From assembly GCA_002269645.1 (NCBI GenBank), contig NIVC01000432.1, positions 341,003 through 405,002 on the forward strand: a stretch of DNA of 64,000 nucleotides, in the 5' to 3' direction. Each line of letters begins with the position of its first letter. Position 1 is the first letter of the stretch. The translations under genes and the position numbers were made by a program. The notes below the pieces were generated by a model that did not search any database, was not told where the DNA came from, and saw only the letters and a program-made list of their open reading frames with translations. Of this stretch, positions 40,103 to 63,896 are shown piece after piece. Source of the stretch: Macrostomum lignano. Taxonomy: Eukaryota.

Positions 40103-42057
40103 TTAGGCATTCAAAAGTGGATTCGATCTCAATTGTAAGTCGCACCTTTCCGCACTTTTAGAATCTTTATTAACATCCCCAACCGCTTCCTGATGCTGCC
40201 GCTGTTCTCGATTTGATTTCATTTTCTTCACATAACAATATGCTGCAGAGATGAGAACAATGAGAATGATAATGAGACTAACAACAACAATAATCGTGAT
40301 CTGAACGGAGGCGGACATTGTGCTGCAGTCGGGAGCGGGTGGCTGTGGCGGCGGCATGTCGCAAGTTCTGAACAGCTGCGGTTGCGAGTCGCCTTTGGTT
40401 GCTGGGATCTGCTTGAACTCAATCAGCGCTGGCAGGCTCAAATCCATTGACTGACAAGTGAAAATTGGATTTTTGCTGCTGTCCCAGTGTACGGACAGGG
40501 CGCAGCGGCTGCAGCGGTCATTGTAGCTGGTGCTAGAATTGAATAATCTGTAAACAATATTTGACGATAAGATCGTTATATAGGTAGTAAGCAGCAAATT
40601 TCATAAAATTCTGTCATAATTATCTTACACCATCATGTTTCGAATACTCCGTATGCAGTTGTTCAACGGATCGGAGAAATCGGCCTCAACAGAGGCGCCA
40701 CTCGAGGGTTGGCTATCGTAGAAGTGAATGACATAGCCGGTCCACAGCTGCTGGGAGGACAGGGCGAGCGGAGACTTGAATGGGAGCTCCTTTGACCTTG
40801 CAGAGTCTGCAGCGATGCACAGATAGAGGACAATCAACAATGATAGCCAAGTTTCGTTACAGGTTCAACTGATAAAAATACGGTTAAGGAAACACCTTCA
40901 CACCTCAAAAAACACCCAGCTCTGAATAAAACTCACTCTGTTGAATGAACGGACGGAAAAAGTCTGAGTTGTTTCTGTTTTTAGGAACAGTGAAGACGTT
41001 GCCAAGATAATTCTTCGCGATGCTGAATGCCTCAGCAGGTGTCATAGGCTCAGGTGTTATCAGATAGCAGGAGCCCTCAAAGAACAGCATGTTCCTGTGG
41101 CAATAGTCTCTGCCCAGCACCTGCACATCCACCTGCACTCCCTTGGCGTTGGACCGGACTTGCTTATCGTCAGAGCGGAACTCCAAAGCCAGCTTGTACG
41201 ACCTGAGCAAAGGTAAGAGAGCAAATATGATGATGAATACTTCAGAGAATAACCAGTCCAAAATCACAGATGCTTCAAGACACTCACGAGTCCCACAAGT
41301 TCACGATTTGGCTCTTGACTTTCACTGATTTGTTTGAGCACCAGAACTCATTTCGGTACGTGGCTGAAATGCAGGAATGCAGTTTAAAACAGAAAATGAA
41401 GTATGTAAAATTATAATTCAAGTTGAGTTAAAATGGCTGAGAAACTCACTATCGTTCAGTTTTAAATTCAGGCTGAACACATCAGCCTTGGTATTGGAGA
41501 CATTGCACTGAGCCTCAGACACATCGTTGGTGTCAAAGTCGATAACGGGCACACGAATGTACATCTGTCTCGGTTTATCGTAGTTGGCAGGCTGCAGAGT
41601 CCACTTGCACTGCAGGTTCACCTGGTAGCCTGGCTCGTCTCGAACAAATGACAACACCTGAAGCGTAAAATTTCGAAAACTGTGTTTCGCATGATAGATT
41701 TAAGCAACGAATACCAATTCAATCACTGAGTACATTTATGAACATTAAAGTACACTACTTGAGCACACAAAACTAACTGAGGCTGAGTACAATTATGCAG
41801 TTGAGCCCTTTACCCGCTGTGGATTGTCGTCGCCGATCTCAACCTTAATATCCTTCAAGGCCTTATTCATGCAGTGCTGGTATTCAGATTTGACCATCGC
41901 TGAAAATAGTAAGCAAATATGGATCGATCTCCCTACAGAGAGTGTAAGAGAACTATTTAACCTGCCAAGTAGCAAATATTCAGCAAGAAAACTTACGAGT
42001 GCAGGACGCTAACAGAGTTAATGCGAAATAACAGCAGTAATAATTGACGATCTGCAT
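40103..42057 (-). CDS. Receptor copy A: signal peptide-CUB-C-type-lectin-like domain-TM-tail, intact, ~439 aa
   Basis: Exons 42057-41997, 41899-41814, 41657-41450, 41363-41288, 41202-40937, 40806-40629, 40547-40103 (1320 nt, phases consistent). CUB-like YQVNLQCKWTL..WCS..LEFRSD..KGVQV; CTLD-like YCHRNMLFFEGSCYLI..LWTGY..CALSVHW..FTC; TM VQITIIVVVSLIIILIVLISAAYCYV. Confidence 0.8.
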
Positions 42058-42299
42058 AGATATATGCGGGAGCTGAAACAGCAATAGAAATTTTTTAGGT
42101 TCTATGTGAATTTATACATACTTAATTTAAAAAAAATGTGCTTTAGTTTCTATTAATTTATTTCGCATTTATCGTTAACATTTTTTAGGAATAATTAAGT
42201 TTTCTTAAGTTTAAATGAGCTGTTGTTTTCCCGCCAATTTAAATTACGTTTTTTTGTGTCCTTCGCTCTCGTCGTGTGATTCGTCCGCCAAATTCGCGC

Positions 42300-42690
42300 C
42301 ATGTCTTTGATTAATTTTGCTTTCTATTGTGTCCCAAACTTCTTGAGTCATCAGATTGAATACTTTATCCTCTTGTAGTGAGGTTTTCAAAATTCGAAAC
42401 TTCACCTGAGATTTCCTGTTCAAATTTATCACGGGGAGTACTGTCAAAGTACACTTAACAGGAGCTTCAATTTCTAACCCCTATATGGCACTTTGGGCAA
42501 ATCCTATTGTCGTAAGGGATATCTGGTGTCGCAGTCCTCATTGTTTCGCAGGCCAAGTTTATGCTTTTTTGCTAGTCTAAACTGTGACAGGGGAGGCTTA
42601 AATTCTGAATTGGAAACTTCTAGTAGCTCGTATTTGTACAGAAACAATGCACTGTTGTTCCATTTAATAATCAGGTCTTCTAATGACTAA
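42300..42690 (-). mobile_element. Degenerate 3' end of a non-LTR retrotransposon ORF2 (C-terminal CCHC zinc-finger region)
   Basis: With frameshifts reads ..PLSQFRLAKKHKLGL..IPYDNRICPKCHIG..EIE..KC.., resembling the FRL..H.L..E.GR....R.C..C...E.E.H...C tail of LINE ORF2 proteins. Confidence 0.5.
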
Positions 42691-43099
42691 AACCATGCAA
42701 ACCACTTTACCACTAGCATACTATACACATTAAATCAGTATTTTTCTCTCAGGTTTGCTTTATTAGAAACTTACACGAAAAAGTCAACAGTAATGCTAAG
42801 ACGCTGATTTTTAAAAAAATTATAGCTCAAATCAATTTTTTTGTTTAAAAATTGTTTATAGAATGAAAAACCACTAATGACCTGGCACAAAAAGTAGACG
42901 CCATAGAAGACTATTAAAAAGCTAATTGTCAATAAAAAAATCAGTTCAAAATTCAGGAATATTACTGAATAGCGAATCACCGAAATTTTGCAAGCAGTTT
43001 TCAATAGTGACTTAACATAGCATTGAAGTTTAACACAAATTATCTTTATTAGCACAGTCAGAATAATAAAGTAATTTTGTTCGTAGTTAGTCCTCAAGA

Positions 43100-46030
43100 A
43101 TGTCCGTAGGCGAGTGCCAGGGATGTCTGTAGGCGATTCTCAGGGATGTCTGTAGGCGATTCTCAGGGATGTCTGTAGGCGATTGCCAGGGATGTCTGTA
43201 GGCGATTCTCAGGGATGTCTGTAGGCGATTGCCAGGGATGTCTGTAGGCGATTCTCAGGGATGTCTGTAGGCGATTGCCAGGGATGTCTGTAGGCGATTC
43301 TCAGGGATGTCTGTAGGCGATTCTCAGGGATGCCTGTACGCGATTGCCAGGGATGTCTGTAGGCGATTCTCAGGGATGTCTGTAGGCGATTCTCAGGGAT
43401 GTCTGTAGGCGATTCTCAGGGATGCCTGCAAGCGATTCCCAGGGATGTCTGCGGGTGATTCTCAGGGATGTCTGCGGGTGATTCTCAGGGATGTCTGCAG
43501 GCGATTCTCAGGGATGTCTGTAGGTGATTCTCAGGGATGTCTGCAAGCGATTCTCAGGGATGTCTGTAGCTGATTCTCAGGGATGTCTGCAGGTGATTCT
43601 CAGGGATGTCTGTAGGCGATTCTCAGGGATGTCTGTAGGCGATTCTCAGGGATGTCTGCGGGTGATTCTCAGGGATGTCTGCAGGCGATGCTCAGGGATG
43701 TCTGCAGGCGATTCTCAGGGATGTCTGTAGGCGATTGCCAGGGATGTCTGTAGGCGATTCTCAGGGATGTCTGTAGGCGATTGCCAGGGATGTCTGTAGG
43801 CGATTCTCAGGGATGTCTGCGGGTGATTCTCAGGGATGTCTGCAGGCGATTCTCAGGGATGTCTGTAGGCGATTCTCAGGGATGTCTGCAAGCGATTCTC
43901 AGGGATGTCTGCGGGCGATTCTCAGGGATGTCTGTAGGCGATTCTCAGGGATGTCTGTAGGCGATTCTCAGGGATGCCTGTAGCTGATTCTCAGGGATGT
44001 CTGTAGGCGATTCTCAGGGATGTCTGTAGGCGATTGCCAGGGATGTCTGTAGGCGATTCTCAGGGATGCCTGTAGGCGATTGCCAGGGATGTCTGTAGGC
44101 GATTCTCAGGGATGTCTGTAGGCGATTGCCAGGGATGTCTGTAGGCGATTCTCAGGGATGTCTGTAGGCGATTCTCAGGGATGCCTGTAGGCGATTGCCA
44201 GGGATGTCTGTAGGCGATTCTCAGGGATGTCTGTAGGCGATTGCCAGGGATGTCTGTAGGCGATTCTCAGGGATGTCTGTAGGCGATTCTCAGGGATGCC
44301 TGTAGGCGATTGCCAGGGATGTCTGTAGGCGATTCTCAGGGATGTCTGCAAGCGATTCTCAGGGATGTCTGCGGGTGATTCTCAGGGATGTCTGCGGGTG
44401 ATTCTCAGGGATGTCTGCAGGCGATTCTCAGGGATGTCTGTAGGCGATTCCCAGGGATGTCTGCGGGTGATTCTCAGGGATGTCTGCGGGTGATTCTCAG
44501 GGATGTCTGCGGGTGATTCTCAGGGATGTCTGCAGGTGATTCTCAGGTATGTCTGCAGGCGATTCTCAGGGATGTCTGTAGGCGATTGCCAGGGATGTCT
44601 GTAGGCGATTCTCAGGGATGTCTGTAGGCGATTCTCAGGAATGTCTGCGGGTGATTCTCAGGGATGTCTGCAGGCGATTCTCAGGGATGTCTGTAGGCGA
44701 TTGCCAGGGATGTCTGTAGCTGATTCTCAGGGATGTCTGTAGGCGATTGCCAGGGATGTCTGTAGGCGATTCTCAGGGATGTCTGTAGGCGATTCTCAGG
44801 GATGCCTGTAGGCGATTGCCAGGGATGTCTGTAGGCGATTCTCAGGGATGTCTGCAAGCGATTCTCAGGGATGTCTGCGGGTGATTCTCAGGGATGTCTG
44901 CGGGTGATTCTCAGGGATGTCTGCAGGCGATTCTCAGGGATGTCTGTAGGCGATTCTCAGGGATGTCTGCAAGCGATTCTCAGGGATGTCTGCGGGTGAT
45001 TCTCAGGGATGTCTGCGGGTGATTCTCAGGGATGTCTGCAGGTGATTCTCAGGTATGTCTGCAGGCGATTCTCAGGGATGTCTGTAGGCGATTGCCAGGG
45101 ATGTCTGTAGGCGATTCTCAGGGATGTCTGTAGGCGATTCTCAGGGATGTCTGCGGGTGATTCTCAGGGATGTCTGCAGGCGATTCTCAGGGATGTCTGT
45201 AGGCGATTGCCAGGGATGTCTGTAGCTGATTCTCAGGGATGTCTGTAGGCGATTGCCAGGGATGTCTGTAGGCGATTCTCAAGAGTGTCTGTAGCTGATT
45301 CTCAGGGATGTCTGTAGCTGATTTTCAGGGATGTCTGCAAGCGATTCTCAGGGATGTCTGCGGGTGATTCTCAGGGATGTCTGCGGGTGATTCTCAGGGA
45401 TGTCTGCGGGTGATTCTCAGGGATGTCTGCAGGCGATTCTCAGGGATGTCTGTAGGCGATTCTCAGGGATGTCTGTAGGCGATTCTCAGGGATGTCTGCG
45501 GGTGATTCTCAGGGATGTCTGCGGGTGATTCTCAGGGATGTCTGCAGGTGATTCTCAGGTATGTCTGCAGGCGATTCTCAGGGATGTCTGTAGGCGATTG
45601 CCAGGGATGTCTGTAGGCGATTCTCAGGGATGTCTGTAGGCGATTCTCAGGGATGTCTGCGGGTGATTCTCAGGGATGTCTGCAGGCGATTCTCAGGGAT
45701 GTCTGTAGGCGATTGCCAGGGATGTCTGTAGCTGATTCTCAGGGATGTCTGTAGGCGATTGCCAGGGATGTCTGTAGGCGATTCTCAGGGATGTCTGTAG
45801 GCGATTCTCAGGGATGTCTGTAGGCGATTCTCAGGGATGTCTGCGGGTGATTCTCAGGGATGTCTGCAGGCGATTCTCAGGGATGTCTGTAGGCGATTGC
45901 CAGGGATGTCTGTAGCTGATTCTCAGGGATGTCTGTAGGCGATTGCCAGGGATGTCTGTAGGCGATTCTCAAGAGTGTCTGTAGCTGATTCTCAGGGATG
46001 TCTGTAGCTGATTTTCAGGGATGTCTTTAG
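43100..46030. repeat. Large minisatellite, 23 bp unit (CAGGGATGTCTGTAGGCGATTCT), ~2.9 kb
   Basis: Visible tandem array directly downstream of receptor copy B. Confidence 0.97.
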
Positions 46031-46312
46031 GCAATACAGAATATTGAAATTGCACTGTTGCTGAAAAAATATAAATCATTCTCAAACAAGCAAATACTGT
46101 ATAATTTGAACGCATCGAAATTGGCGAAGTCCACACAAAACATGCAGACAGGAGCCAAAATATATTGAATAAGGCATGGCCCGAAAAGATTACAGGTGGG
46201 AAAAAATACAGCAAAAGTGACCACCAAAAAAGGTATTGCATCGGTCAACAACAACAGCAACAGCACAACACGGGCTCGATTCCGTCTAAAGCCATAAGCA
46301 GAAACGACATGT

Positions 46313-49300
46313 TTAATTCCGATTAAGTTTCTCATCTACAACGTGCGCAAAGGAACGCCAAGCAGTTAGTTTAGTGCATGGGACTGCGTCTCCTACTCGT
46401 ATATGAACACTTTTGAGGCTGGCAAGTTGTTCGAGGCTAAGCTCTTGTTGTTGTTGTTTTTCTTGTTCTTGTTGGTAACCATTATTATCATTATTACTTC
46501 GAAGTACTACTATAATTACTTTTGGTTGTTGCATGCCGCTATTGTTGTTCTTGATGACTAAGCTATCGGTATTTTTGGTATTGGATGTTGAGCTGTTGCT
46601 CTTGCAGGTTGAATTGCTGAAGCAGGAGGCTGACCTGCTGCTGTTGGAGGCTGAGCTGCTGCTGTTGGAGGCTGAGCTGCTGCTGTTGGAGGCTGAGCTG
46701 CTGCTGTTGGAGGCTGAGCTGCTGCTGTTGGAGGCTGAGCTGCTGTTGCATCAGGCTCAGCTGTTGACGTTGGAGACTGAGTTGTTGTCGCTGTAGATTG
46801 AGCTGCTGTTCTTGAGGCCGAGTTGTTGTTGGAAACAGACGGAACGACGGCAGCGTGTCGCAAGTGGTGAACAGCTGCGGATGCAGGTCACCTTTTGTTG
46901 CAGGAATCTGCTTCAACTCGATCATGGCTGGCAGTTTAGATTCCATGGATTCGCAGGTGAAATTCACCGAGCCACCGCTGCCCCAATGCATGGCCACAGC
47001 ACAACGGTCGAAGTATTCGAATTTCGAGCTCGATTTGAAAAATCTGAAAGCAAAAAATATTAAAATCACCGATAAATGCAACAGATAGCAGTTAAGAGAT
47101 AACACTGAGGCTTTCAAGCTTCGACCTCTACTCTCTGTCACGGCTACGCACAACAGTACATCAGTAAGTAGCTCATACTGCTTACACAGAAAAGTTTCTC
47201 AGAGCAACACCGCAACCGGCCTGCGGGTCGCAGTACTGGGCAGACTTGAAAACGGCAGGCGGACTGCTAGACAAAATATCTATGAAATAGCCGGTCCACA
47301 TGGAGCCAGTCAGGCGGAGCGGAGACTCGAATGGGAACTCGCCAGCTCTGTCCGAGTCTGCAATGATTGGGATACCAACAAATCGATCAACAGGCGATAA
47401 AGCATGCCATATAATAAACGCAATACTAACGCAATACGCCTGACAATGCCTCAGCAGGTGTCAGGCGCTCAGGTGTTATCAGATAGCAGGAGCCCTCAAA
47501 GAACAGCATGGTCCTGTGGCAATAGTCTCTGCCCAGCACCTGCACATCCACCTGCACTCCCTTGGCGTTGGACCGGACTTGCTTATCGTCAGAGCGGAAC
47601 TCCAAAGCCAGCTTGTACGACCTGAGCAAAGGTAAGAGAGCAAATATGATACTGAATACTTCAGAGAATAAACAGTCCGAAATCACAGATGCTTCAAGAC
47701 ACTCACGAGTCCCACAAGTTCACGATTTGGCTCTTGACTTTCACTGATTTGTTTGAGCACCAGGACTCATTTCGGTACGTTGCTGAAATGAAGGAATACA
47801 GTTAAAAAACAAAAAATGAAGTTCGTAAAATTATAATTCAAGCTAAACTGAAACGGCTGAGAAACTCACTATCGTTCAGTTTTAACTTCAGGCTGAACAC
47901 ATCAGCCTTGGTATTAGAGACATTGCACTGAGCCTCAGACACATCGTTGGTGTCAAAGTCGATAACGGGCACACGAATGTACATCTGCCTCGGTTTATCG
48001 TAGTTGGCAGGCTGCAGAGTCCACTTGCACTGCAGGTTCACCTGGTAGCCTGGCTCGTCTCGAACAAATGACAACACCTGAAGCGTAATTTTTTGAAGAA
48101 TTGTGTTTCGCATGGTAAATCCAAGTTGCATATTTGTTTATCTATTAGTGCATTTCTGTTGGAAAAGTTATGCACCTGCAGAGGCATAAAAGGTGAGCGA
48201 GGTGCACAAAAGAGGCACTTTGGTGGCCTATTTCGTGTGTGTTTTAGAAATGCACCTGAGTGCACCTTTTATGCCTAAATGTAACCAATATTTTTGAAAA
48301 GAGGCATGAAAGGTGTAAAATAGGTGAAGTGGTCAGGCAGTAGGTGAATTCTCACTTTTGATTGGTTGCGGCGGTAGGGGCAGTAAAGGTGCGTAAGGGG
48401 CACTGGAGGTGCGCAAAAGGTGAACAGTAGGCTCAAAAGTGAGGCACAGCAGGTGCAGGAAAGATGCTGAAGGGGCGCAGAAAGTGCACGAAAGGTGAAT
48501 TAGAGGTGCATAAGGTGTACATGTGCGCCGTAAATATGTATACAGGTGCATTTCCAAAACACGCTCGAAATAGACCCCTAAAGTGCCTCTTCTGTGCACC
48601 TCGCTCACCTTTCATGCCTATACACGAATTAACGCATTAAGAATTCGTAACAAAAAATTAACTGAGAGTTACATACTCGTATATTGCACGCACAGATTAA
48701 ACATAGAAAAGCTTAATTTACACCTATACTAATCGCTGCTATCCCCTTCCTGATCCTGACAAACCTAAACAAAACATTTCCTATACTGATAAGTTTTAAT
48801 GACTTTCAAATACTCAGGAAAAGCTCCGAAAAGTGATGAAAAGGTTTGCATTAGTGAGTAAAAACTTCGAATAGTGAGAAAAGGTAGCAAAGAACTTCGC
48901 CAGTTGAAACTTTAACGCCCCTTGCATTGCCTCTACGCCTAAAGTGCCCACTTTTTTTAAATAAAAATAAAGTGCCCACTGTGCACCTTTTATTCACCTT
49001 TCGTGCCTCCAGTGCACACTGTACACCTTTTATGCACCTCCACCGCAGCGCACCTTTTTTTCACCTTTCACTCCACCAATGCCCCCAATTCCTACTTTGT
49101 TCACCTTTTGTGCCTCAACGCACACTGTGCACCTTTTATGCACCTAAATCCCCTACGACACCTGTGCTCCTACCGCCTAGTTCGTGCCTTAAATTCACCT
49201 TCCGCCCCTGCAGAGGCACTCAGGTGAACACGCGGTGCACAAGTGGCACAAAATAGGCATAAGAGAGGCGAAAGTGAGGCAGAAGGTGCAAAACTCTTCA

Positions 49301-49671
49301 CCTTTCATGCCTACTTTAAAAACTCAAAATCCAACGGGATTGTCACTTAAGTCAGCTCAATGAGCATTCAAGCATTGAGCACATAAAACTAACTGAGGCT
49401 GAGCACAATTATGCAGTTAAGACGTTTACCCGCTGTGGATTGTCGTCGCCGATCTCAACGCTAATATCTTTCAAATGCCTTTCTATACAGTGCTGAGCTT
49501 CCGATCTGACCGTGACTGTAAAATAGTAAACAAATATAGATAGACTTGCCAACACGGAGTGTAAGAGAATTGTTTAACCTGTCATATAGCAAATATTCAA
49601 CAACAAGACTTACGGATGCAGGCCGCAAACAGAGTAAAGGCTGAATAAAAGCAGCAAATAAGGAGCTTCAT
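46313..49671 (-). pseudogene. Receptor copy B: disrupted (exon-5 deletion with donor loss, exon-7 frameshift, no clear TM)
   Basis: Exons 49671-49614, 49515-49430, 48077-47870, 47782-47707 intact; exon 5 from 47621 hits TAG at 47426; exon 6 47357-47186; exon 7 from 47043 runs into a 21 bp repeat in a frame different from the TAEP stalk frame of copy C. Confidence 0.75.
48181..49312. mobile_element. Nested palindromic insertion(s) in intron 2 of copy B with AGGCATRAAAGGTG...CACCTTTYATGCCT ends
   Basis: Terminal motif at 48181 and 48302 and inverted at ~48264, ~48607 and ~49299; intron 2 is 1352 bp here versus 156 bp in copy A. Confidence 0.65.
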
Positions 49672-52099: not shown

Positions 52100-52483
52100 T
52101 TAAACTACATAAACACTGTTTGCAGTATACACAGGATTGCTTGCATGCTTTCGAAGAGGCATTACGACTTGTGCAGTGTTATTAACCTGCGGAAAAGCGT
52201 TGCGCCTCTTATAAACTATCCTTGCCACTTTGTAACAAATCAGCGTTGTCGATACAACGAATAAAACAACTAGTGCGCCAATGATTATCGCAATAGCAAA
52301 ACTAGCCTCTTCAGACGTAGGAGGATGGTGTAGGTTGACACTAGTGGATACTGTTGTCGACATTGGCTTTAATTTCAACGTACTGTCAACGTACAGCGCT
52401 CGATCAAATTCTCCAGGGTCGCGGCTCTGTCTGTTATCAGTAGCACTGGAGTTAATAAATGCGAAGAAGCGATTAATACGCAA
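52100..52483 (-). CDS. Orphan stalk-TM-cytoplasmic tail segment ending NPVYTANSVYVV*; probable terminal exon or pseudogene of another membrane receptor
   Basis: 127 aa ORF with S/T-rich stalk, 23-residue hydrophobic helix, basic stop-transfer residues and NPxY; upstream 52500-52650 shows only broken CTLD-like peptides. Confidence 0.5.
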   Translation of the reverse strand: MRINRFFAFINSSATDNRQSRDPGEFDRALYVDSTLKLKPMSTTVSTSVNLHHPPTSEEASFAIAIIIGALVVLFVVSTTLICYKVARIVYKRRNAFPQVNNTAQVVMPLRKHASNPVYTANSVYVV

Positions 52484-52939: not shown

Positions 52940-53850
52940 ATATGGGTGATTTGGCATGGCCTATGGGTGATTCTCGGACTGCCTATGGGTGATTCTCAAG
53001 ATGCCTATGGGTGATTCTCAAGATGCCTATGGGTGATTCTCAAGATGCCTATGGGTGATTCGCAGGCTGCCTATGGGTGATTCTCAGGCTGCCTATGGGT
53101 GATTCTCAGGCTGCCTATGGGTGATTCTCAAGATGCCTATGGGTGATTCTCAGGCTGCCTATGGGTGATTCTCAGGCTGCCTATGGGTGATTCTCAGGCT
53201 GTCTATGGGTGATTCTCAGGCTGCCTATGGGTGATTCTCAGGCTGCCTATGGGTGATTCTCAGGCTGCCTATGGGTGATTCTCAGGCTGCCTATGGGTGA
53301 TTCGCAGGCTGCCTATGGGTGATTCTCAGGCTGCCTATGGGTGATTCTCAGGCTGTCTATGGGTGATTCTCAGGCTGCCTATGGGTGATTCTCAAGATGC
53401 CTATGGGTGATTCTCAAGATGCCTATGGGTGATTCTCAAGATGCCTATGGGTGATTCTCAGGCTGCCTATGGGTGATTCTCAGGCTGCCTATGGGTGATT
53501 CTCAGGCTGCCTATGGGTGATTCTCAGGCTGCCTATGGGTGATTCTCAGGCTGCCTATGGGTGATTCTCAGGCTGTCTATGGGTGATTCTCAGGCTGCCT
53601 ATGGGTGATTCTCAGGCTGCCTATGGGTGATTCTCAGGCTGCCTATGGGTGATTCTCAGGCTGCCTATGGGTGATTCTCAGGCTGCCTATGGGTGATTCT
53701 CAGGCTGCCTATGGGTGATTCTCAGGCTGCCTATGGGTGATTCTCAGGCTGCCTATGGGTGATTCTCAGGCTGCCTATGGGTGATTCTCAGGCTGCCTAT
53801 GGGTGATTCTCAGGCTGCCTATGGGTGATTCTCAGGCTGCCTATGGATCA
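52940..53850. repeat. Minisatellite, 22 bp unit (GCTGCCTATGGGTGATTCTCAG)
   Basis: Visible tandem array. Confidence 0.96.
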
Positions 53851-54871
53851 TTCTTAAGCTGCCTAAAGGTAATTCTTAAGCTGCTGATAAATGCTTTAAC
53901 AAGATGATGGCTATACATGATTCTTAAGGCTACTTACGAGTACGTGCAGTTTGCAAAATGAGAACAACCACAAACTGCACTGTAAAACGCCTAGGTAAAA
54001 TTTTGTTTTATTAGGAATGGCATAGTAGCACTATAACAAAGATAAATAATAGGTGAGTATAACAGAGCTAAATAGATGGGAGTGAGTTAGATATTTTGCT
54101 AAGATTAGAATACTTATATTAGGCGCAATGTAATAAAACAAGTTACAAGTACAGTGAAAAGTACTTTATCAGGCCACATAAATTTTTTTGAAATTACAGA
54201 GACTTTATTGATGCTACATGTATAACAAATTGAATTTGATTCACTATGTAGCATGCAGACACGTGCAGAGGAGCATAATACGAGCATGACATGATTTTTT
54301 TATCGCGCCAACAAAAAACTACACAAATATCTAGCAAAGCATGTCCTTCGCATATTTTATATTTTGCTGTCAGTTGAGTCGATTGATATCCATTGGTGGC
54401 ATTTTTTAATATTAATAATCCTGGGATGAACCAGATTCTGTAATACTCTCAGACTCTAATAAAAGTTAGATTAAAAAAACTGACGATCGTATATTTCACT
54501 GGTGGCAAGATGATAGTGCAAGTTCCAGTGGTAATTCCTGTTCATATTTCATAATCAACTTTAAGGACTAAATCTTAAAATACAATTTAAAAAATTGCTT
54601 TAAAGTTTTCAAAAAAACTGCGCAGTGCTTTAACAAAGGCGCGAACCGGTTCCAACACGGGCAAAAACATGGAAAATCTTACTAATCACCCAAAAGTACT
54701 AACCTATTACATAATAGTTAAAAGCATTTAGGCAAATGTTATCAATATTGCATGCAGCTGTTTAATTTCAAGCTCGAAACACACACGCAGTTACAATAGT
54801 ACATTAATACCCATGCTTTAAGGGCGTTAATGGGAAAATCAGAAGGTGCCGTTGGTATTACTATCATTGTG

Positions 54872-55122
54872 CCATAGACATTTGTGTCCTTGACAAAGTG
54901 GGACAAAATTAGCGGGCAGTTAATGACATTATGACATACTTATGTCATAAGTACTGTCATAAGTATTGTCATAAGTTATGTCATAAGTTTGTTAATGACA
55001 AACTTACTTTGCATTAAAGTAAGTTTGAAATAGACAATCGGGCCTTAAATGCCATTAACTGCCCGCTAATTTGAATTAAAGTAAGTTTGACTCCTGCAAG
55101 CGGGCTTAAATGTAGTCTATGG
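54872..55122. mobile_element. Small element bounded by CCATAGAC...GTCTATGG with an inner 20 bp inverted repeat
   Basis: AAATTAGCGGGCAGTTAATG / CATTAACTGCCCGCTAATTT, plus internal GTCATAAG repeats. Confidence 0.5.
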
Positions 55123-55909
55123 CTTTACAAGGCAGGAATAAGTGCCCAGCGGGCACAAAGGTCATGGTAAAATAATGTTGATATACTCGTAACTACCAAA
55201 AACTATAGTGCATAAAGTGTATTTTTTTATTTTGTGACTCAATGCTGACAAAAGTTTTTTAGGTATAATTTTTCGATTTATAGGTGTGATTCTTGGAATA
55301 GGCGCTGTCTATGGGCGATTCTCGAATAATTAATTAAGAGTACCTTTCACTTCTAAAAAATTGTTCATTAAAACAATATTATTTAACGTAGCGCTTACCG
55401 TTTACGAGCTGTATACTAATAAACAAAAAAGTGTTCTAACACTGAATAAGTGAGCACAAAGTGTTTGAAACCCAATTCAATAAAATTAAAGTGAGCAAAT
55501 ATAATTATTACTGTATAATAAAATTACTAATATAATACAATTACTACTACTTATAAAATACTTTAGTACAGAACAACTTACCATGATTAAAATATATTAG
55601 AACTATACTGTTATATATTACAAATAAGAAATAATTAATCCAAAAATTATATTACTAGGCACTGCAGAGACGGCACGTATGAAATTCAAGTATATTAGCA
55701 AATCATCCAAGAATTAGCTTGCTGAACAAGGAAATAGAGAAGCTTCCTTGCAATCAAGAGAGGAGCAAAGGCAATGAAATAAAATTCAGAGCAAATAATT
55801 ATTTTACATGCATTATTATTATTATTAATATTAATATTATAATTATAATAAATAAATAAATATAATAAAATATTAATATTATATTGATCGTACTCGTAGT
55901 TTATTCTCA

Positions 55910-56390
55910 ATGCTATCTATGGGTGATTCTCAGTGCTATCTATGGCTGATTCTCAGTGCTGTCTATGGGTGATTCTCAGTGCTATCTATGGCTGATTCTC
56001 AGTGCTATCTATGGGTGATTCTCAGTGCTATCTATGGCTGATTCTCAGTGCTGTCTATGGCTGATTCTCAGTGCTGTCTATGGGTGATTCTCAGTGCTGT
56101 CTATGAGTGATTCTCAGTGCTGTCTATAGGTGATTCTCAGGCTGCCTATGGCTGATTCTCAGGCTGCCTATGGGTGATTCTCAGGCTGCCTATGGGTGAT
56201 TCTCAGGCTGCCTATGGGTGATTCTCAGGCTGCCTATAGGTGATTCTCAGGCTGCCTATGGCTGATTCTCAGGCTGCCTATGGGTGATTCTCAGTTCTAT
56301 CTATGGCTGATTCTCAGGCTGCCTATGGCTGATTCTCAGTGCTGTCTATGGGTGATTCTCAGTGCTGTCTATAGGTGATTCTCAGTGCTG
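55910..56390. repeat. Minisatellite, 22 bp unit (TGCTRTCTATGGGTGATTCTCAG-type), same family as 52940-53850
   Basis: Visible tandem array directly downstream of receptor copy C. Confidence 0.95.
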
Positions 56391-56635
56391 TGTCGCAGAA
56401 ATCGCGGTCGCATTCTCTTTCTGTGCGAGAGGACCTAAGGTTCGCTTCAAGGAGCGGAGTGGCCTCGCTAATTCCATGGGGAATACGAGCGCTCGTATTA
56501 CATCAGGAATCGCAGCCTAAGAACTACCAAGACGCACACGCACACACTTGGGTTGCTTGGACCCAAGTTGGGTTGCTGTTAAAAGGCGCGCGCAAGCGCA
56601 GATTTGCATAGAACAGCGAGTCCGCGAGGGTCAGA

Positions 56636-58699
56636 TTACGCTCGAGCTGCAGCATCATCCGTGTCATTTGCAATTAATTTATCCTCCTTTCCAGCAGTTG
56701 CGGAATGTCTCGCATCCTGTTCAGTCTGTTTCAAGGCGTGAGCCTCCGCTTCGTTAGATTGCCGAGCGGCTGCACTGCAACAGGCTAGCGAACCGCGGCG
56801 TCGTAGAAAGAAAAAAACAAAAACAAAAAATAAAATGCTGAACAAAACAATTGGAAATATAATCGCGATAACGATTTTAGAACTCAGTCCGGACTCAAGT
56901 ACGTCTGGGGATGGTTTGGGAGAAATTGGCGGAACTTTTGATGAAGGCTCAGCTGTTGTTGTTGTTGGAGGCTGCGGAGTTGGCGGCAGAGGCAGGGTGT
57001 CACAAGATGTGAACAGCTGCGGATGCAGGTCACCTTTTGTTGCAGGAATCTGCTTCAACTCGATCATGGCTGGCAGTTTAGATTCCATCGATTCGCAGGT
57101 GAAATTCACCGAGCCACCGCTGCCCCAATGCATGGCCACAGCACAACGGTTGAAGTATTCGAATTTCGAGCTCGATTTGAAAAAGCTGAAAGCAAAAAAT
57201 ATTAAAATCACCGATAAATGCAACAAATAGAAGTCTACTCTTCGTCACGGCTACGCACAACAGTACATCAGTAAGTAGCTCATACTGCTTACACAGAAAA
57301 GTTTCTCAGAGCAACACCGCAACCGGCCTGCGGGTCGCAGTACTGGGCAGACTTGAAAACGGCAGGCGGACTGCTAGACAAAATATCTATGAAATAGCCG
57401 GTCCACATGGAGCCAGTCAGGCTGAGCGGAGACTCGAATGGGAACTCGCCAGCTCTGTCCGAGTCTGCAATGATTGGGATACCAACAAATCGATCAACAG
57501 GCGATAAAGCATGTCATATCATAAACGCAATACTCACTTCTCTGAATGAACGGACGGAAAAAGTCTGAGTTGTTTCTGTTTTTAGGAACAGTGAAGACGT
57601 TGCCAAGGTAATTCTTCGCGATGCTGAATGCCTCAGTAGGTGTCATAGGCTCAGGTGTTATCAGATAGCAGGAGCCCTCAAAGAACAGCATGGTCCTGTG
57701 GCAATAGTCTCTGCCCAGCACCTGCACATCCACCTGCACTCCCTTGGCGTTGGACCGGACTTGCTTATCGTCAGAGCGGAACTCCAAAGCCAGCTTGTAC
57801 GACCTGAGCAAAGGTAAGAGAGCAAATATGATGATGAATACTTCAGAGAATAACCAGTCCAAAATCACAGATGCTTCAAGACACTCACGAGTCCCACAAG
57901 TTCACAATTTGGCTCTTGACTTTCACTGATTTGTTTGAGCACCAGGACTCATTTCGGTACGTGGCTGAAATGAAGGAATACAGTTAGAAAACAAAAAATG
58001 AAGTTCGTAAAATTATAATTCAGGTTGAGTTGAAATGGCTGAGAAACTCACTATCGTTCAGTTTTAACTTCAGGCTGAACACATCAGCCTTGGTATTGGA
58101 GACATTGCACTGAGCCTCAGACACATCGTTGGTGTCAAAGTCGATAACGGGCACCCGAATGTACATCTGTCTCGGTTTATCGTAGTTGGAAGGCTGCAGA
58201 GTCCACTTGCACTGCAGGTTCACCTGGTAGCCTGGCTCGTCTCGAACAAATGACATCACCTGATGCGTAGAATTTGATTCACTTTGCGGTTTTATACAAT
58301 TTTTGATGGCAAATACAAAAATCAGCTAACAATTGCCAACCAATTAGCAACTAGCGACAGCCAACCAATCAGAAAATAGCAAGTGCTAATCAATTGGAAA
58401 TTACTAAGTCATTAACTAAAAACTATCAGGATCCTTTTTACAGGTCCCTATATTGATAGCAATTAAAAGGGTAAATATTAAATTACCCTCTGTGGATTAT
58501 CGTCACCGATTTCAACAGAGATGTCCTTCATCGCATTGTTCATACAGTGTTGATCTTCTGAGCTGACGTACACTATAAGTCATAAATTGAATACGAAACA
58601 ATTTGTTTACTGTGAATGCAATAAGAGTAGTATTATTAATTGGAATTTTTACTTACACGTCAAAAGCAAAACCAGTAGAATAACGCACTTGCACTTCAT
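56636..58699 (-). CDS. Receptor copy C: signal peptide-CUB-CTLD-like-P/T stalk-TM-tail, intact, ~466 aa
   Basis: Exons 58699-58657, 58572-58487, 58259-58052, 57964-57889, 57803-57538, 57464-57293, 57185-56636 (1401 nt, same phases as copy A). TM IVIAIIFPIVLFSILFFVFVFFFL followed by RRRGS. Confidence 0.82.
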
Positions 58700-59138
58700 T
58701 GTACTCAACTCATGCACACAACAGATACCATTTTTATATCACATAATATAAGACCGAAAGTTATTTAAGGTATGGCTAAGTAAAGCATTGGTAATAGACA
58801 ATGCTACTCGATAAGCTGATAAGACTACTGCACTGTTGTATCAATAAATAGGAAGGTTTATTAATAATCAACATAACTTATTAAGCTATAGCCTTTTATC
58901 AAATCCACAGAGCAAACTTGCATCCAAGCTACTTTTAGTTCAGTAGAAAATCAAATTGAAGTATTTTAATGTATTTTATGTCATGATTTGTCGATCGCCC
59001 CTCGCTTAACACATCCGCCTAGTCTTTCACTGTCTGCCCCGCCACCGCCGCAATTCTTTATAGCCTTGTCGGTTGTTACGACCAAGGCTGCAACGTATGT
59101 ACATTATATTATTAGCTAGCTGAACGTTGGCTAATGTA

Positions 59139-60352
59139 TTGGGTTGTAAAAGTTTCGAGCGTTTTCTTTAAACTTCTAGAACTTTATCTAGAGAAATTTC
59201 TTAGAATGTTCTATGGGGGTATATAAGAGTGACCAGTGCGCACTACCAGATCGACTTGGTTATGATCAACCTTCACCTAAAATGGCTACGCAACAACACG
59301 ATCAACGTTACCTCATTCGAGCATCTTTACTTTTCTGCTTCAAGCTGGGCGACTCAGCAGGTGAGGCGCATCGCAAGTTATGTCAGGCGTATGGCGAGGA
59401 CTGTCTGAGCGAGCAACGCTGCCGTGCCTGGTTTGCACAGTTCAAGAAGGGTGACGAATAATTCGAAGACAAGGAGCGCTCTGGTCGTCCACCTGAGCTC
59501 GATATCCAGCAGTTTGCCCTGCTTGTTGAAGCTGAGCCAAATCTCACAACACGTGAAATGGCAGAGTACTTCAAGGTCTCTGCCATGACCATCAACCGCG
59601 GCCTTCATCAACTCGGCTAAGTGCACAAGCTTGGTCGATGGGTTCCGCACGAACTTTCACGTGAGAACAAGGATCAGCGCATCATCACATGCACCCAACT
59701 CCTGTCCTATCGTCGCAACCCAGGATGGCTTGATACCCTGGTGACTGGCGATGAGAAGTGGGTGGCCTACTTCAACATCACATGCAAGCGCCAGTGGCTT
59801 GGCGTGGGGAATCAGCCACAACCAACGCCCAAACCTGATCCACACCAAAAGGTTATGCTGTGCGTCTGGTGGAATTCCAGTGGAATCGTCCACTGGGAGC
59901 TCCTGCCTCGTAACACCTGCATCACTGCCGATGTCCACTGTGAGCAGCTGGACAGACTGCACCAGGCTATTGTCAAGCAGCAGGGCGCTGGCGCGAAAAT
60001 TCGATTTCTTCACGACAACGCCCGACCTCAAGTGGCGAAGAAGACACGGCAGAAGCTGCTCGAGCTGGGCTGGGAAGTTATGCCCCACCCTCCATACTCG
60101 CCTGATCTTGCGTCATCAGACTACCACCTGTTCCGCTCTATACAGGACCACATAAATGGCGTGACGTTAAAAGACGAGGAAGTTGCTGCTGCCTGAGTTA
60201 TTTAAGAAGGGCATCCACGATCTCATCGCCAGATGGAAACAGGTCATTGATCAGGATGGTGATTATATCCTGGAATAGAAACTGTTATGGGACTGGAAAA
60301 ATGAATTCAAAGTTTGAGTACAAAAACGCTCGAAACTTTTGTTACAACCCAA
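59139..60352 (+). mobile_element. Full-length but defective mariner (D,D34D-type) transposon
   Basis: TIRs TTGGGTTGTAA(CA)AAAGTTTCGAGCGTTTT, TA at 59137-59138 and 60353-60354. Transposase from ATG 59282 with WVPHEL, TGDEKW, HDNARP, YSPDL; in-frame stops at 59459, 59618 and 60194. Confidence 0.92.
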
Positions 60353-61314
60353 TACATTACGGCTGCACCAATAGCAAATTGTTTACGTCTGCAAGTCACT
60401 GCAAAAAATTACGCATGCTTTCTTACTAATTGAACTGAAAGTAAAGAAAAACTATTATAGCAAGACAATATGCCTAAGTGGCCCATCTATTTTTAAACTT
60501 TTAATCCATACACTTATACTAAACTTCGCTAGTTGTCTATCCGTTGCTATGGTTACACCGTAGAAGCCAACGAAATACGGTACTATTGTGCGGCATAAGC
60601 GACTCCGACAAGCTCGTAAATTCAACATACTAAAGATGTGCTGAGCATCTGAGATCTGATATAATCTTAATTTCTAAACCTAAATATTAGGAAGATAGAA
60701 AATGAGTAAAAAGCAAAGCACTTGTCATTTTTGACGAACAATCAGACTTATTGCAGGTAAAGTTATATATTTTAATAAATAAAGTTAATAAAAACGGACT
60801 GCTATGCTTAGTGTCGCAACCGCAAGTGAATTATAGTGACAATGCAATCAGTATAGCCTTCTAGGTAGTTTAGACTGATCCGCAGTTCCACTGATCCAGT
60901 TATTAGTTTTTATCGCTGCTAAAGCTGAATAAGGAGGCTTGGCCTCATGACCGTGAGTCGCTTCTGCTGTTGGCTAACGCAGCATGAATATATTTACCAA
61001 TATTACATGAGTCGCTAAGGTTTGAAAGAAGGAGCAAGCCACTAACCGATGCAGAGGTCACAAAGCTGAATAATACGTTGCGAAACATAAAAATATTGCA
61101 AGTAAATTACGCAGTTTGACAGCTTTTAGTGCATAAAATTAGTATGAAACGCTGGAGCAAAAAATTAAAAAGAGTTTGGTTTGCACCAATTGATTGCAAA
61201 ACTATTTTTTGTATTAATTAACAAATTTTTCTTAAAAAGAAGAGCTTAAATGTATAACGCTGTGTATAATATAATTAAACCGGGAAATACATAACATCAA
61301 TGTCGTCCGTTTTC

Positions 61315-61714
61315 TACGTATGAAACATTCGCCGACACTCATGCAGACACTTCTACAGACACTTCAGCCTCTGTCGTACGAATCGTAGGAACAGGCATTA
61401 AATTTGTTTATTCCTTACAAACTACCAGTAAACTGCTTTATTTTAAGCTTTTTTTTCTTTATTTTATTAAATATGAATCATGAAATTTGTTATTCTGCAT
61501 AGATTCTCTTCACGTGAAGAAGAATGTTAAATTTGTCCAGGACACTTCCTAATTCATATTTAATAAAATAAAGCAAAAAAAAGCTTAAAATAAAGCAGTC
61601 TACTGGTAGTTTGTAAGGAATAAACAAATTTAATGCTTGTTCCTACGATTCGTACGACAGAAACTAAAGTGTCTGTAGAAGCCTCTGAACAAGTGTCGGC
61701 GAATGTTTCATACG
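61315..61714. mobile_element. Foldback/MITE-like element: ~160 bp inverted arms around a ~75 bp spacer
   Basis: CGTATGAAACATTCGCCGACAC...TTAAATATGAAT is inverted as ATTCATATTTAA...GTGTCGGCGAATGTTTCATACG. Confidence 0.75.
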
Positions 61715-62404
61715 TCGTTTTCTCGCAAAATACTTTGCTTTTGCAACGGCGAACACGGAGAAAACAAATTTAAATTGTAAATCATGTCCAAAGCGTTTGA
61801 AGAAATGACTCTTCTTCCCCCGTGTCTGTGCACTATACTTTTCTGCCCCAAGCCAGTGCATCTTTTGTTAACTTTCCGCCAGATGCCTGCGAATTCCGTA
61901 TATCTGAAATAGCGTAGCTACCGAAAAAATATAGAGCAGTCTCAGAAAGCAGCTGTGCAAATTTTACCTTCCCTCTAGTCAAAACATGGGATAGATCATA
62001 TTCCATTGATAGCATTTAGAACGTGGCATGCAATTGATATACAGAAAAAAACATATTTCACATGCACGTCAAAGGATATTTCGAGACATTCTGCATCTCA
62101 ATTCGAGTTTTAACAATACACCATTGAATGCAGCACTTAATATAAGATTATAGATAAAATGGGCATAGAAAATGTTCCGTTTTTAGAAATAGTTATAAAT
62201 ACTAGCGCACCAAGCCCCCAATGGGGCATTCAAGTTCAAAATTAAAACGGAGCACCAAGTGAAACCATTAAAATCATCCGAATATTTGACCAACTTCGAA
62301 TTCGATTTTTTCATCAAAAAAGTTATGTATGACCGCCGAAGAATTACAATTTTAAAGCTCCACCAGAAGGTTTAAATCGACCAGAAGGTTCTCGAAAAAA
62401 TCAA

Positions 62405-62473
62405 CCACAGACAGAAAGACAGACAGACAGACAGACAGAAAGTCAGACAGACAGACAGACAGACAGACACTCT

Positions 62474-62547
<74 letters not shown>

Positions 62548-62690
62548 TAGTCAGACAGACAGACAGACAGGCAGACAGGCAGACAGACAGACAGACAGAC
62601 AGACACTAAGACAGACAGGCAGACAGACAGTCAGACAGACAGACAGACAGTCAGACAGACAGACAGACAGACAGACAGTCAGACAGACAC
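62405..62690. repeat. (CAGA)n microsatellite
   Basis: Visible run. Confidence 0.96.
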
Positions 62691-63154
62691 AAGGATAAAC
62701 AGCTCAAAATCAGCGCATAGATGACTCATGATCTATTGAAATTAAAGTACACCCTGTGCGAGCGTGTAAGGGCTCTCAAGTGCTCAGGGGTCAGAGGCAA
62801 TAATCAAGAGTTGTTAGACTCCTCGCAGGCGGCCCGTGGGTCGAGTGCCTAATGCTAAAGCTATAGGCCACACTGGAAACTTGTCGGTACAAAAGCAACC
62901 AAGTAAAAGGGCAGCTTGAATGTCTGTGTCTGAGAATAGAAAAAAACTAATTTGTTAACAATGCATACTTAGCATTAAAGTTTGAATTGCACAATATCAA
63001 CCCTTTACTCGAGATTTATAATATAATTTTACTAATTATTGACCAGGTAACGTGACACAACCAATTTTGATTTGCAGTAGAAAAACGAACAAACTCTTCC
63101 AAACTCATTGTTTAGAAGTTTTTGTTTTGCCGTCGTTCATACCAACAGATATGT

Positions 63155-63896
63155 TCAAACTGTCGGGTCGGTCTTGCTCTGCTGAGAAGCCTCCCCATCC
63201 TCACCGCGTGCATTCAGAGGCACTTTCTCCGGTCCAGCAGGAGTCTCAGCTTCAGTTTGGCCACCGCTTTGCGGGCTGGCTCTTCTTTTAAAGAATATTA
63301 CAATGGCAACTACAATTACGGCGATTATAATAGCTACTATGACAACTAAAGCGATAATAATGACAGTCTTTGTAGACTGAGGCTCGGCTTCAGTAACAGT
63401 TCTTGTCGGTGCGGAATTCGTGTCGAGCTGCTTCTTAGGCAGCGTGTCGCAAGTGGTGAACAGTTGCGGATGCGTGTCGCCTTTGAAGGCGGGAATCTGC
63501 TTGAACTCGATCAGAGCTGGTAGCTTTGAGCTCAACGATTCGCAGGTGAAATTCACACGGGAACCACTAGTAATCACCATGGCAACGGCACAAACTGACT
63601 CCACAGCCTGGTTGACAGTGCTACTGATGTAGCTAAAATACGTATAAATAGGACAATAACTGATGACCTTAGCAAAATTCAAGGCAAGGCTCTAACAAAA
63701 CTGAGATAAATATTTTATAAGGTAACTCACACAGTCATATTTCGCCTCTCGTGACAGCATTTCTTACCCGGGTTCATAAACAGGGCTCCGTTGACGGGGC
63801 TCTGGGCTGGCAGATCCACAAAGTAGCCGGTCCACATCTTTCTGCCGACGAGGGACAGCGGAGACTCAAATGGGAACTCACCGCCTCTGTCACTGT
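63155..63896 (-). CDS. Receptor copy D: last two exons (distal CTLD-like part, stalk, TM, tail); gene continues beyond the window
   Basis: Exons 63896-63731 and 63632-63155 with the family phases; FPFESPLSL..MWTGY and FTCESL..LPALIEFKQIPAFKGDTHPQLFTTCD match copies A-C. Confidence 0.8.

Follow-up and report, generated by a model that had tools for sequence, protein, structure and literature searches.

The window, a 64,000-nucleotide stretch of the Macrostomum lignano contig NIVC01000432.1, carries four tandem copies (A, B, C and D) of a gene with GT-AG introns and a full layout of seven exons, all co-oriented on the minus strand and interspersed with satellite DNA and a transposase remnant. 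A tblastn search of the window found no family copies besides these four, and blastn between copies gave 95-97% identity across ~700 bp (E = 0), ruling out chance likeness. The features of the locus are as follows:

33794-36508, minus strand: cytochrome P450 gene (Pfam p450, 6.9e-69 and 3.8e-11), adjoining copy A downstream and marking the end of the array
42057-40103, minus strand: copy A, an intact seven-exon gene with all introns GT-AG and a product of 439 aa by the splice model
42057-41997, 41899-41814, 41657-41450, 41363-41288, 41202-40937, 40806-40629 and 40547-40103, minus strand: exons of copy A, with phases 1-0-1-2-1-2
40937-41657, minus strand: homogenised core of copy A (exon 3 to exon 5 including introns), with counterparts at 47431-48077 in B and 57538-58259 in C
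40629-40806, minus strand: variable exon 6 of copy A, with counterparts at 47186-47357 in B, 57293-57464 in C and 63730-63896 in D
43093-46032, no strand: 23-bp satellite of ~128 copies between A and B (TRF)
49671-46563, minus strand: copy B, laid out as A and C, with exon 5 truncated, its splice donor deleted and an intron 2 of 1352 bp
47431-47447, minus strand: lesion in copy B, ~92 bp (3' end of exon 5 and GT donor) being replaced by 17 bp
46581-46810, minus strand: 21-bp coding minisatellite in the last exon of copy B (TRF and three-frame translation)
52959-53884 and 55903-56391, no strand: related 22-23-bp arrays between B and C (TRF)
58699-56636, minus strand: copy C, an intact seven-exon gene with a product of 466 aa
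58699-58657, 58572-58487, 58259-58052, 57964-57889, 57803-57538, 57464-57293 and 57185-56636, minus strand: exons of copy C, with phases as in copy A
59213-60196, plus strand: Mariner/Mos1-type transposase remnant between C and D, in two separate ORFs (Pfam HTH_48 2.7e-19, Transposase_1 2.2e-23)
63896-63155, minus strand: partial copy D, with exon 6 at 63896-63730 and exon 7 at 63631-63155, including the TM segment

The original prediction of at least four co-oriented tandem copies is in keeping with these models, A, B, C and D all being found where they had been placed, with the splice models confirming the shared exon phases and the conserved VEIGDDNPQR block, present in the N-terminal part of family copies, being read in A (HCMNKALKDIKVEIGDDNPQR), B (HCIERHLKDISVEIGDDNPQR) and C (HCMNNAMKDISVEIGDDNPQR). 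The predicted positions agree with the models except for the low-coordinate boundary of copy B, which lies at ~46.56 kb and not 46.3 kb, and the strand is minus. Only exons 6 and 7 of copy D fall within the window, its upstream exons lying past the window end. Copy A is 96% identical to UniRef A0A1I8GVV4 and has as its orthologue in another assembly BOX15_Mlig022503g1 (438 aa, annotated complete), and copy D is 88-89% identical to the database family protein P0004. The 22-23-bp satellites were rejected as part of the system, unrelated minisatellites occurring throughout the window; tandem repeats make up 15% of the M. lignano genome (PMC5730564). A small TM-containing ORF at 52100-52483 was likewise rejected, matching none of the family exon queries and giving a single sub-threshold Pfam match.

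Copies A and C are predicted to be intact type-I membrane proteins. The copy A protein has a signal peptide, a CUB-like domain, a C-type-lectin-like (CTLD-like) domain, a short Pro-rich stalk, a TM helix at aa 366-401 and a tail of ~40 aa, with copy C following the same order but for a Pro/Thr-rich stalk, a TM helix at aa 382-414 and a 52-aa tail. The expectation of single-pass membrane proteins is borne out by hydropathy, which detects a TM segment in A, C and D and none in B. By hydropathy, sequons and the AF2 helices, copies A, C and D follow the type-I single-pass pattern (signal peptide at the N-terminus, C-terminal TM helix with basic residues facing the cytoplasm, glycosylatable ectodomain), which B, lacking a TM segment, does not. 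The ectodomains of A and C carry 5-7 N-X-S/T sequons, and AF2 models place helices at residues 2-21 and 370-413. Each intact gene would encode a type-I, N-glycosylated, single-pass membrane protein made up of a signal peptide, a short variable N-terminal peptide, a probable CUB domain, an atypical CTLD, a Pro/Thr-rich stalk, a TM helix and a tail. The cytoplasmic tails are short, highly divergent and different in each of copies A-D, and a reading of their sequences turned up neither ITAM/ITIM-like nor any other known signalling motifs, with tyrosine almost absent. A possible PDZ-binding C-terminus in copy D (…DPTV) was considered and rejected, with Pro at position -2.

The lesion in copy B was defined by a three-way alignment of copy B, copy C and the intact B allele of the other assembly; the reading frame would be kept only via a cryptic GTTAGT donor. 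In the open frame the minisatellite of copy B's last exon spells (QQQLSL)n, and a different frame gives (AAQPPT)n, a mucin-like stalk. The repeat occupies the place of the stalk and TM segment, and three-frame translation with hydropathy found no TM segment in any frame. Since it has lost the end of exon 5, the splice donor and the TM segment, copy B of the window is probably degenerate, either a secreted variant or, as these losses suggest, a probable pseudogene. Some members of the family decay, as copy B of the window does and as two fragments from the other assembly (L002 7449-8194 and 18056-18796) also show.

The assignment of the first domain as CUB stood in its cysteine pattern and motif register but not in Pfam, where copy A, P0003, P0004, P0010 and the isolated domain all lacked a PF00431 match up to E 10. 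In copy C the four CUB cysteines are Cys24, 60, 94 and 121, and the motifs YQVNLQCKW, VIDFD, WCSN and LEFRSDD...KGVQV align with real CUB domains in both MAFFT and hhalign, giving the CUB pattern of four cysteines and the order Y..C.W / F..Fd.E / fCG / F.SD...GF, with MAFFT alone putting real CUB domains onto the same cysteines. The hhalign comparison aligned 100 columns in register with a probability of only 12% (P 0.0025), its score of 22.4 standing against 12.0 +/- 2.7 for shuffles and being reached by one of 120. The automatic UniProt name 'CUB domain-containing protein' was rejected as evidence and carries little weight because fragments of the same family bear spurious names (BAH, cadherin, ZP, transposase and longin). 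The first domain is probably, if weakly supported, a CUB domain with the canonical four cysteines.

For the second domain the predicted atypical CTLD was upheld by profile comparison, with neither Pfam nor PDB sequences giving a match. PF00059 (Lectin_C) likewise went unmatched up to E 10 in whole proteins and isolated domains, which gave weak TM-type matches only, and PDB sequences searched with the family profile returned 0 matches up to E 10. Comparison by hhalign of a family-only profile with an independent CTLD profile of 83 sequences (82 real domains and one manually entered consensus) gave a probability of 86% (P 4.8e-6) over 122 aligned columns, with a score of 36.4 against 11.2 +/- 2.2 for column shuffles, none of the 120 reaching it, and P of 0.11-0.4 in cross-domain controls. 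The alignment is in the expected register (C..CY, EA, WTGY against WIGL, C2 and C3), with C0-C0' of copy C being Cys172 and 183, C2 and C3 being Cys298 and 314, and WTGY replacing WIGL. The C1 cysteine of helix alpha-1 is missing from every family member, and additional invariant cysteines lie in the long loop and after beta-5 (Cys275 and Cys345 in copy C); these two may form a substitute bond for the missing C1 disulfide. True C-type lectins, and not CTLDs in general, are defined by the EPN/QPD and WND motifs. Both of these sugar/Ca2+ motifs are absent, the aligned positions reading KSSSKF and VNF, so that the domain is lectin-like and not a predicted lectin. Overall the sequence comparisons support a long-form, atypical C-type-lectin-like domain.

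In modelling and in the representative-library search, database proteins P0001-P0007 served as proxies for spliced A and C. An AF2 model built from family sequences alone reached a pLDDT of 39.6, with Foldseek returning only meaningless ribosomal proteins (E >0.4). An alignment seeded with real CUB and CTLD proteins raised the pLDDT to 68.8, this seeding meaning that the better model leans to those folds. With this CTLD-seeded alignment Foldseek matched the second domain to Mincle, LOX-1, DC-SIGN and NKR-P1B (target-normalised TM 0.58-0.77, E from 4e-5), while the matches to the CUB proteins cubilin and neuropilin, at E ~1e-3, come from the CUB-seeded alignment, the family-only model having failed.

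The tandem family is under concerted evolution, the silent and intronic divergence of one tract lying far below that of its flanks. This tract, the homogenised core, codes for the CUB core plus the CTLD's N-terminal half and is 95-100% identical in exons and 86-100% in introns 3-4, as against 55-82% in the flanking exons and introns; comparing A with B and A with C gives an identity of 59-82% for introns 1, 2, 5 and 6. Among copies A-C, dS is 0.02-0.09 in the core and ~1 in the flanks, and across all between-type pairs it is 0.02-0.17 in exon 5 compared with 0.7-1.9 in exons 6-7, a difference that points to gene conversion of the core. The paralogues are old, with dS of ~1 or more in exons 1-2 and 6-7. 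Gene conversion or unequal exchange keeps their exon 5 nearly identical, and among copies A-C does the same for exons 3-4 together with introns 3-4. The birth-and-death mode originally proposed is reflected in the pseudogene-like copies and fragments, but not in its plain form, the dominant signal being concerted evolution of exons 3-5 by gene conversion. Exon 6, which encodes the CTLD 'long-loop' region, falls into at least four discrete types, with amino acid identity of 41-61% between types and >90% within a type, and its dN/dS of 0.35-0.7 is the ectodomain maximum in most between-type pairs. No region has a dN/dS >1, leaving diversifying selection without a signal.

The same gene order, with the array ending at the P450 gene, occurs in an independent M. 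lignano assembly, on a contig that is 92-99% identical to the window and carries at least 11 full copies and further fragments, with more copies on other contigs. A full HMMER profile search of 1.84 billion representative proteins found family members in M. lignano only and no relative outside it, as expected of the lineage-specific family that had been proposed. Among the gene models published for the array there are chimeras (P0001, P0002), making transcript support for individual copies ambiguous.

Several other explanations bear on these observations. The ectodomain might be not CUB plus CTLD but one or two novel cysteine-rich folds imitating the motif spacing, as the lack of Pfam and PDB sequence matches, the low CUB hhalign probability and the failed family-only model would allow; such folds are unlikely given a CTLD alignment that is full-length, in register and ahead of 120/120 shuffles, a CUB alignment that brings the four cysteines and Y..C.W, F..FD, fCG and F.SD...GF into register, and cross-domain controls that are far weaker. 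The near-identity of exons 3-5 could in turn reflect strong purifying selection on an essential scaffold with no gene conversion, since exon 5 spans the junction between the domains as well as the CTLD core, both places where one expects constraint, and its dN is very low. That reading is highly improbable, as synonymous sites are near-identical too, introns 3 and 4 share the high identity that the other four introns lack, and dS is saturated in the most divergent copy (L1a/L3a) for exon 5 as well, so that the silent sites of exon 5 are not intrinsically slow.

It is very unlikely that collapsed or duplicated haplotypes, or subgenome copies of a neopolyploid genome, produced the array as an artefact of assembly. 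The published M. lignano assembly is redundant, with 180 Mb in blocks >=95% identical (PMC5730564), and within the other assembly the two copies L2a and L2c are identical in all exons compared and ~10.4 kb apart, with L003 duplicating L001. Against this, the difference among copies A, B, C and D is put at 20-35% for sequence outside the core and at 20-45% across the upstream regions, exons 1-2 and 6-7, the introns and the 3' flanks; their tails are different too, and divergence concentrated outside the core argues against haplotype duplicates, which are expected to be uniformly similar. The recurrence of the order and of the P450 neighbour in the independent contig likewise speaks against an array built of haplotypes. 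Taken overall, the region is best explained as one section of a large tandem array formed by a Macrostomum-restricted CUB/CTLD membrane-protein family with a gene-converted core, which we consider probable.

Known systems resemble this family in part. Many members of the C. elegans CLEC family lack canonical sugar-binding motifs, as does the flatworm family. The CLEC proteins (for example CLEC-4, CLEC-41, CLEC-42) are likewise lineage-specific and highly expanded, with CTLD and CUB behind a signal peptide (PMC8051790). They differ in being predicted to be secreted, in often having two CTLDs and two CUBs and in being recognised by Pfam, whereas the flatworm proteins have one CUB followed by one CTLD, plus stalk, TM helix and tail, and escape Pfam; neither Pfam nor the family profile search detected a sequence relationship between the two. 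The best structural matches of the second domain in the seeded model are LOX-1 and NKR-P1 or other NK-cell receptors (target-normalised TM 0.65-0.77), which are likewise membrane-anchored and without Ca2+/sugar motifs and which bind protein or lipoprotein ligands via the long-loop face. Unlike the flatworm proteins, with their C-terminal anchor and missing C1, these receptors are type-II proteins anchored at the N-terminus that lack a CUB and retain the C1-C4 disulfide. Neuropilins, NETO, CDCP1, DCBLD, Kremen and LRP3/12 share the type-I topology with membrane-distal CUBs for ligand or co-receptor binding, and neuropilin and cubilin CUBs are among the fold matches of the seeded model; sequence homology with these single-pass CUB receptors was undetectable, and none of these receptors is known to combine one CUB with a CTLD. 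In attractin, which has a CUB as well as a CTLD, EGF, kelch and PSI modules lie in between. An uncharacterised protein of Darwinula stevensoni (P0016, Pfam CUB and Lectin_C) has a CUB followed by CTLDs in one polypeptide of ~400 aa, but its two CTLDs are canonical and Pfam-recognised, it has no C-terminal TM segment and the family profile search did not retrieve it.

The proteins would act as putative cell-surface binding receptors, with specificity set mainly by the CTLD long loop of exon 6. As the lectin motifs are missing, a protein or other non-sugar ligand is more likely than a Ca2+-dependent glycan. A diversifying receptor system for innate immunity, self/non-self or gamete recognition would be speculation and is rather unlikely. 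The family is lineage-restricted, tandemly expanded and membrane-anchored with a CUB/CTLD architecture like that of recognition molecules, its putative ligand-binding loop exon comes in discrete divergent types with the highest dN/dS of the ectodomain, and C. elegans CTLD and CUB proteins respond to pathogens and bind bacteria (PMC8051790). Set against this are dN/dS below 1 in all regions, tails with no recognised signalling motif and almost no tyrosine, and the absence of lectin sugar-binding motifs; a literature search, which covered full texts for the locus tags Mlig016362 and Mlig004633 as well as supplements of M. lignano transcriptome papers, found no expression or polymorphism data for the family. 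A cassette-type arrangement, in which a conversion-homogenised CUB/CTLD scaffold carries interchangeable exon-6 loops (at least four types) and type-specific tails for partner, sperm-egg or microbe discrimination in an outcrossing hermaphrodite, is quite improbable; if true, it would be a flatworm parallel, evolved independently, to variable clusters of lectin-like receptors such as those of NK receptors or nematode CLECs.

What the array holds is a species-restricted, uncharacterised gene family of a familiar kind, and the locus is a clean example of gene conversion limited to part of a gene. Expression studies will need copy-specific exons, given the chimeric gene models published across the array. 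Invertebrate recognition systems usually draw their raw material from expanded CUB and CTLD families, which in free-living flatworms have hardly been studied. As M. lignano is open to transgenesis and RNAi and serves as a model of regeneration, ageing and sexual conflict, a lineage-restricted membrane family with discrete variants of a probable binding loop may offer a tractable entry to flatworm cell-surface recognition.

The four gene copies that had been predicted from the sequence (A to D), with their shared exon phases and conserved N-terminal block, were borne out in detail by gene models, all on the minus strand. In copies A and C all introns are canonical GT-AG, with phases 1-0-1-2-1-2, and the block C…KDI.VEIGDDNPQR is common to copies A, B and C. 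The spliced copy A product is 96% identical to an M. lignano UniRef entry, and a tblastn search with every family protein found no further family copies in the window. The second intron of copy B (48200-49350 region) is 1352 bp long; in A and C it measures 156-227 bp. Internally repeated units occur within the additional sequence, which is also found in the L002 contig (see below).

Features of the array and its surroundings (window coordinates)
33794-36508, minus strand: cytochrome P450 gene directly downstream of the array; introns hold (GACA)n and 27-bp repeats
42057-40103, minus strand: copy A, seven exons, ORF of 439 aa (spliced model)
49671-46563, minus strand: copy B, layout like A and C
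52100-52483, minus strand: 127-aa ORF between B and C, with a stalk-like segment, strong TM helix and short basic tail
58699-56636, minus strand: copy C, seven exons, ORF of 466 aa (spliced model)
59213-60196, plus strand: mariner/Mos1-type transposase (HTH_48 and Transposase_1) in two reading frames, between C and D
63896-63730 and 63631-63155, minus strand: copy D, last two exons only, the rest lying past the window end

The tandem array is real. Contig NIVC01001192.1 of assembly GCA_002269645.1 (L002) runs collinear with the window at 92-99% identity, indicating that the window represents the same locus in another assembly, haplotype or subgenome. The L002 contig carries orthologues of D, C, B and A followed by a P450 gene matching window 33.8-36.5 kb, with further copies upstream. 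Promoters, exons 1-2, exons 6-7, most of the introns and the 3′ flanks differ by 20-45% between the window's copies, and on this sequence evidence the copies are true paralogues, with duplicated haplotypes excluded. Counted in two stretches only, the array comprises eight complete copies with two fragments (L002) and another three copies (L001, which is duplicated on a second contig, L003); other family members lie on contigs of 716, 405 and 173 kb. The published M. lignano assembly is redundant (PMC5730564) such that genome-wide counts of the family are inflated roughly two-fold. L002 contains two instances of a unit of approximately 10.4 kb, identical in their exons and each with a full copy and a fragment (162-1888 and 10537-12263; 7449-8194 and 18056-18796), arising either from a very recent segmental duplication or from redundancy of the assembly.

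The prediction of a lineage-specific family was upheld by database searches. A word-index search of 5.8 billion proteins with the copy A product returned eight matches, all from M. lignano, while a HMMER family profile run against 1.84 billion cluster representatives matched seven proteins, every one of them traced to M. lignano through its source name or its cluster. The proteomes of other flatworms are expected in that library via UniRef, and the restriction of the HMMER matches to M. lignano indicates a family with no detectable sharing with planarians or parasitic flatworms.

Assignment of the two extracellular domains was tested by profile comparison. Pfam gave no CUB or Lectin_C match at E up to 10 with five queries and the family profile matched none of the PDB sequences. 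Independent CUB (24 sequences) and C-type-lectin-like (CTLD; 83 sequences) domain profiles, each built from PDB-match domains, Pfam CUB/Lectin_C-annotated proteins and one hand-written consensus, were compared by hhalign with family-only alignments. The C-terminal domain aligned with the CTLD profile over 122 columns (probability 86%, P 4.8e-6) in the textbook register, with C0..C0′Y, EA in helix alpha-1 and WTGY for WIGL, then C2 and C3. The N-terminal domain matched the CUB profile weakly over 100 columns (P 0.0025, probability 12%) with all four cysteines and the typical motifs in register. Cross-comparison of the CUB region with the CTLD profile and the reverse gave P 0.11-0.4, and the observed score was reached by none of 120 column shuffles for CTLD and one of 120 for CUB. 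Aligned by MAFFT alone, genuine CUB and CTLD domains also fall on these cysteines. An AF2 model from family members only was useless (pLDDT 39.6), and one from an alignment seeded with real CUB and CTLD proteins (pLDDT 68.8) matched in Foldseek the CTLDs of Mincle, LOX-1 and NKR-P1B (target-normalised TM 0.6-0.77) as well as cubilin and neuropilin, which are CUB proteins, although such a model leans to the folds put into its alignment and serves as a consistency check only. Of the two predicted domains the CTLD is therefore well supported, while the CUB assignment is probable.

The predicted CTLD is atypical. The C1 cysteine of helix alpha-1 is missing in every member, extra invariant cysteines lie in the long loop and after beta-5, the long-loop region is extended, and the EPN/QPD and WND motifs are absent. 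As such the domain is lectin-like but would not be predicted to act as a Ca2+-dependent lectin.

In keeping with the predicted single-pass topology, copies A, C and D each carry basic residues after a strongly hydrophobic segment, and A and C have a hydrophobic N-terminus with 5-7 N-glycosylation sequons in the ectodomain; all three are predicted type-I membrane proteins. In copy B approximately 92 bp comprising the end of exon 5 and the donor site have been swapped for 17 bp (47431-47447), and the junction carries a duplicated TATTGCGTT motif. The same site is intact in the B allele of L002 (38680-38770) in a stretch that is otherwise 99% identical, suggesting a recent, allele- or subgenome-specific event. 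In both the window and the L002 contig a 21-bp coding minisatellite takes over in the last exon of B, which then stops with no TM in any frame; copy B is most plausibly a pseudogene and could be no more than a secreted variant.

The ORF at 52100-52483 has no similarity to family exons, with only a sub-threshold Pfam match to Amnionless (E 0.008), and may represent the final exon of a membrane-protein gene that is unrelated or very degenerate. Satellites of related 22-23-bp units (43093-46032, 52959-53884 and 55903-56391; core GATTCTCAG…TGTCT…GG) fill the intergenic space of the array, the first ending approximately 0.5 kb downstream of the copy B stop and the third approximately 0.25 kb downstream of the copy C stop. 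As approximately one-third of the window is minisatellite, this placement may have no special meaning. The transposase is probably a decayed element.

Comparison of the copies shows that they are mosaics. Exons 3-5 of A, B and C are 97-99% identical, with introns 3-4 at 86-100%; identity is 65-82% in exons 1-2 and, for A against B or C, 63-71% in exons 6-7 and introns 5-6. Exons 3-5 have a dS of 0.03-0.06 between A and C, and elsewhere it is approximately 1 or saturated. Among copies representing all types in both assemblies, dS is 0.05-0.17 in exon 5, 0.02-0.48 in exon 3 and 0.7-1.9 in exons 6 and 7, and it is saturated everywhere for L1a/L3a, the most divergent and most upstream copy in the stretches covered. 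With silent and intronic sites homogenised, the process is gene conversion, or else unequal exchange that recurred, with its centre on exon 5, and goes beyond constraint at the protein level. Four discrete types of exon 6 can be told apart (A; B/C; D-like; L1b, a copy in L001), with 41-61% identity between types and more than 90% within a type. The long-loop region, encoded here by exon 6, is the usual ligand-binding face of CTLDs. dN/dS is below 1 in all regions and, in most between-type pairs, highest in exon 6 (0.35-0.7). Birth-and-death evolution, as originally proposed, accounts for part of the pattern, with gene death seen in the decay of B and in two fragments, but the homogenised exons 3-5 mean that the mode is also concerted, and the family combines old duplication with concerted evolution of part of the gene and the occasional loss of copies.

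The NCBI models are an RNA-seq-guided annotation (PMC5730564), in which the copy A orthologue is a complete 438-aa gene, suggesting that this orthologue is transcribed. Several models are, however, chimeric. The database protein P0001 (UniRef A0A1I8GVV4) is made of exons 1-4 of B and exons 5-7 of A, a junction that would require an intron of 6.5 kb, and the NCBI model for P0002 spans 30 kb over several copies (L002 10001-39632). These models reflect either read-through or splicing between copies at the homogenised exon, or else errors of annotation. The P450 gene is itself fused to a family fragment in a mis-predicted UniRef protein (P0008). The array locus tags did not occur in the searchable literature or in supplements of three M. 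lignano transcriptome papers.

The predicted architecture argues for a cell-surface binding receptor, whose specificity would vary with exon-6 type, and the missing lectin motifs favour a ligand that is not a glycan or is bound independently of Ca2+. The short tails show no relationship between types and, on inspection, no known signalling motif. An immune or gamete-recognition role would be a speculative possibility. No family of type-I receptors with one CUB and one CTLD is known to have been described, although a protein of the ostracod Darwinula stevensoni (P0016) has the same CUB-then-CTLD order. The closest functional analogues are the CLEC proteins of nematodes that carry CTLD and CUB domains; they are secreted and pathogen-responsive, and likewise lineage-expanded (PMC8051790). 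LOX-1, the NK receptors and other non-lectin CTLD receptors come close as well. The locus is real, well defined and uncharacterised, while being unsurprising in kind.
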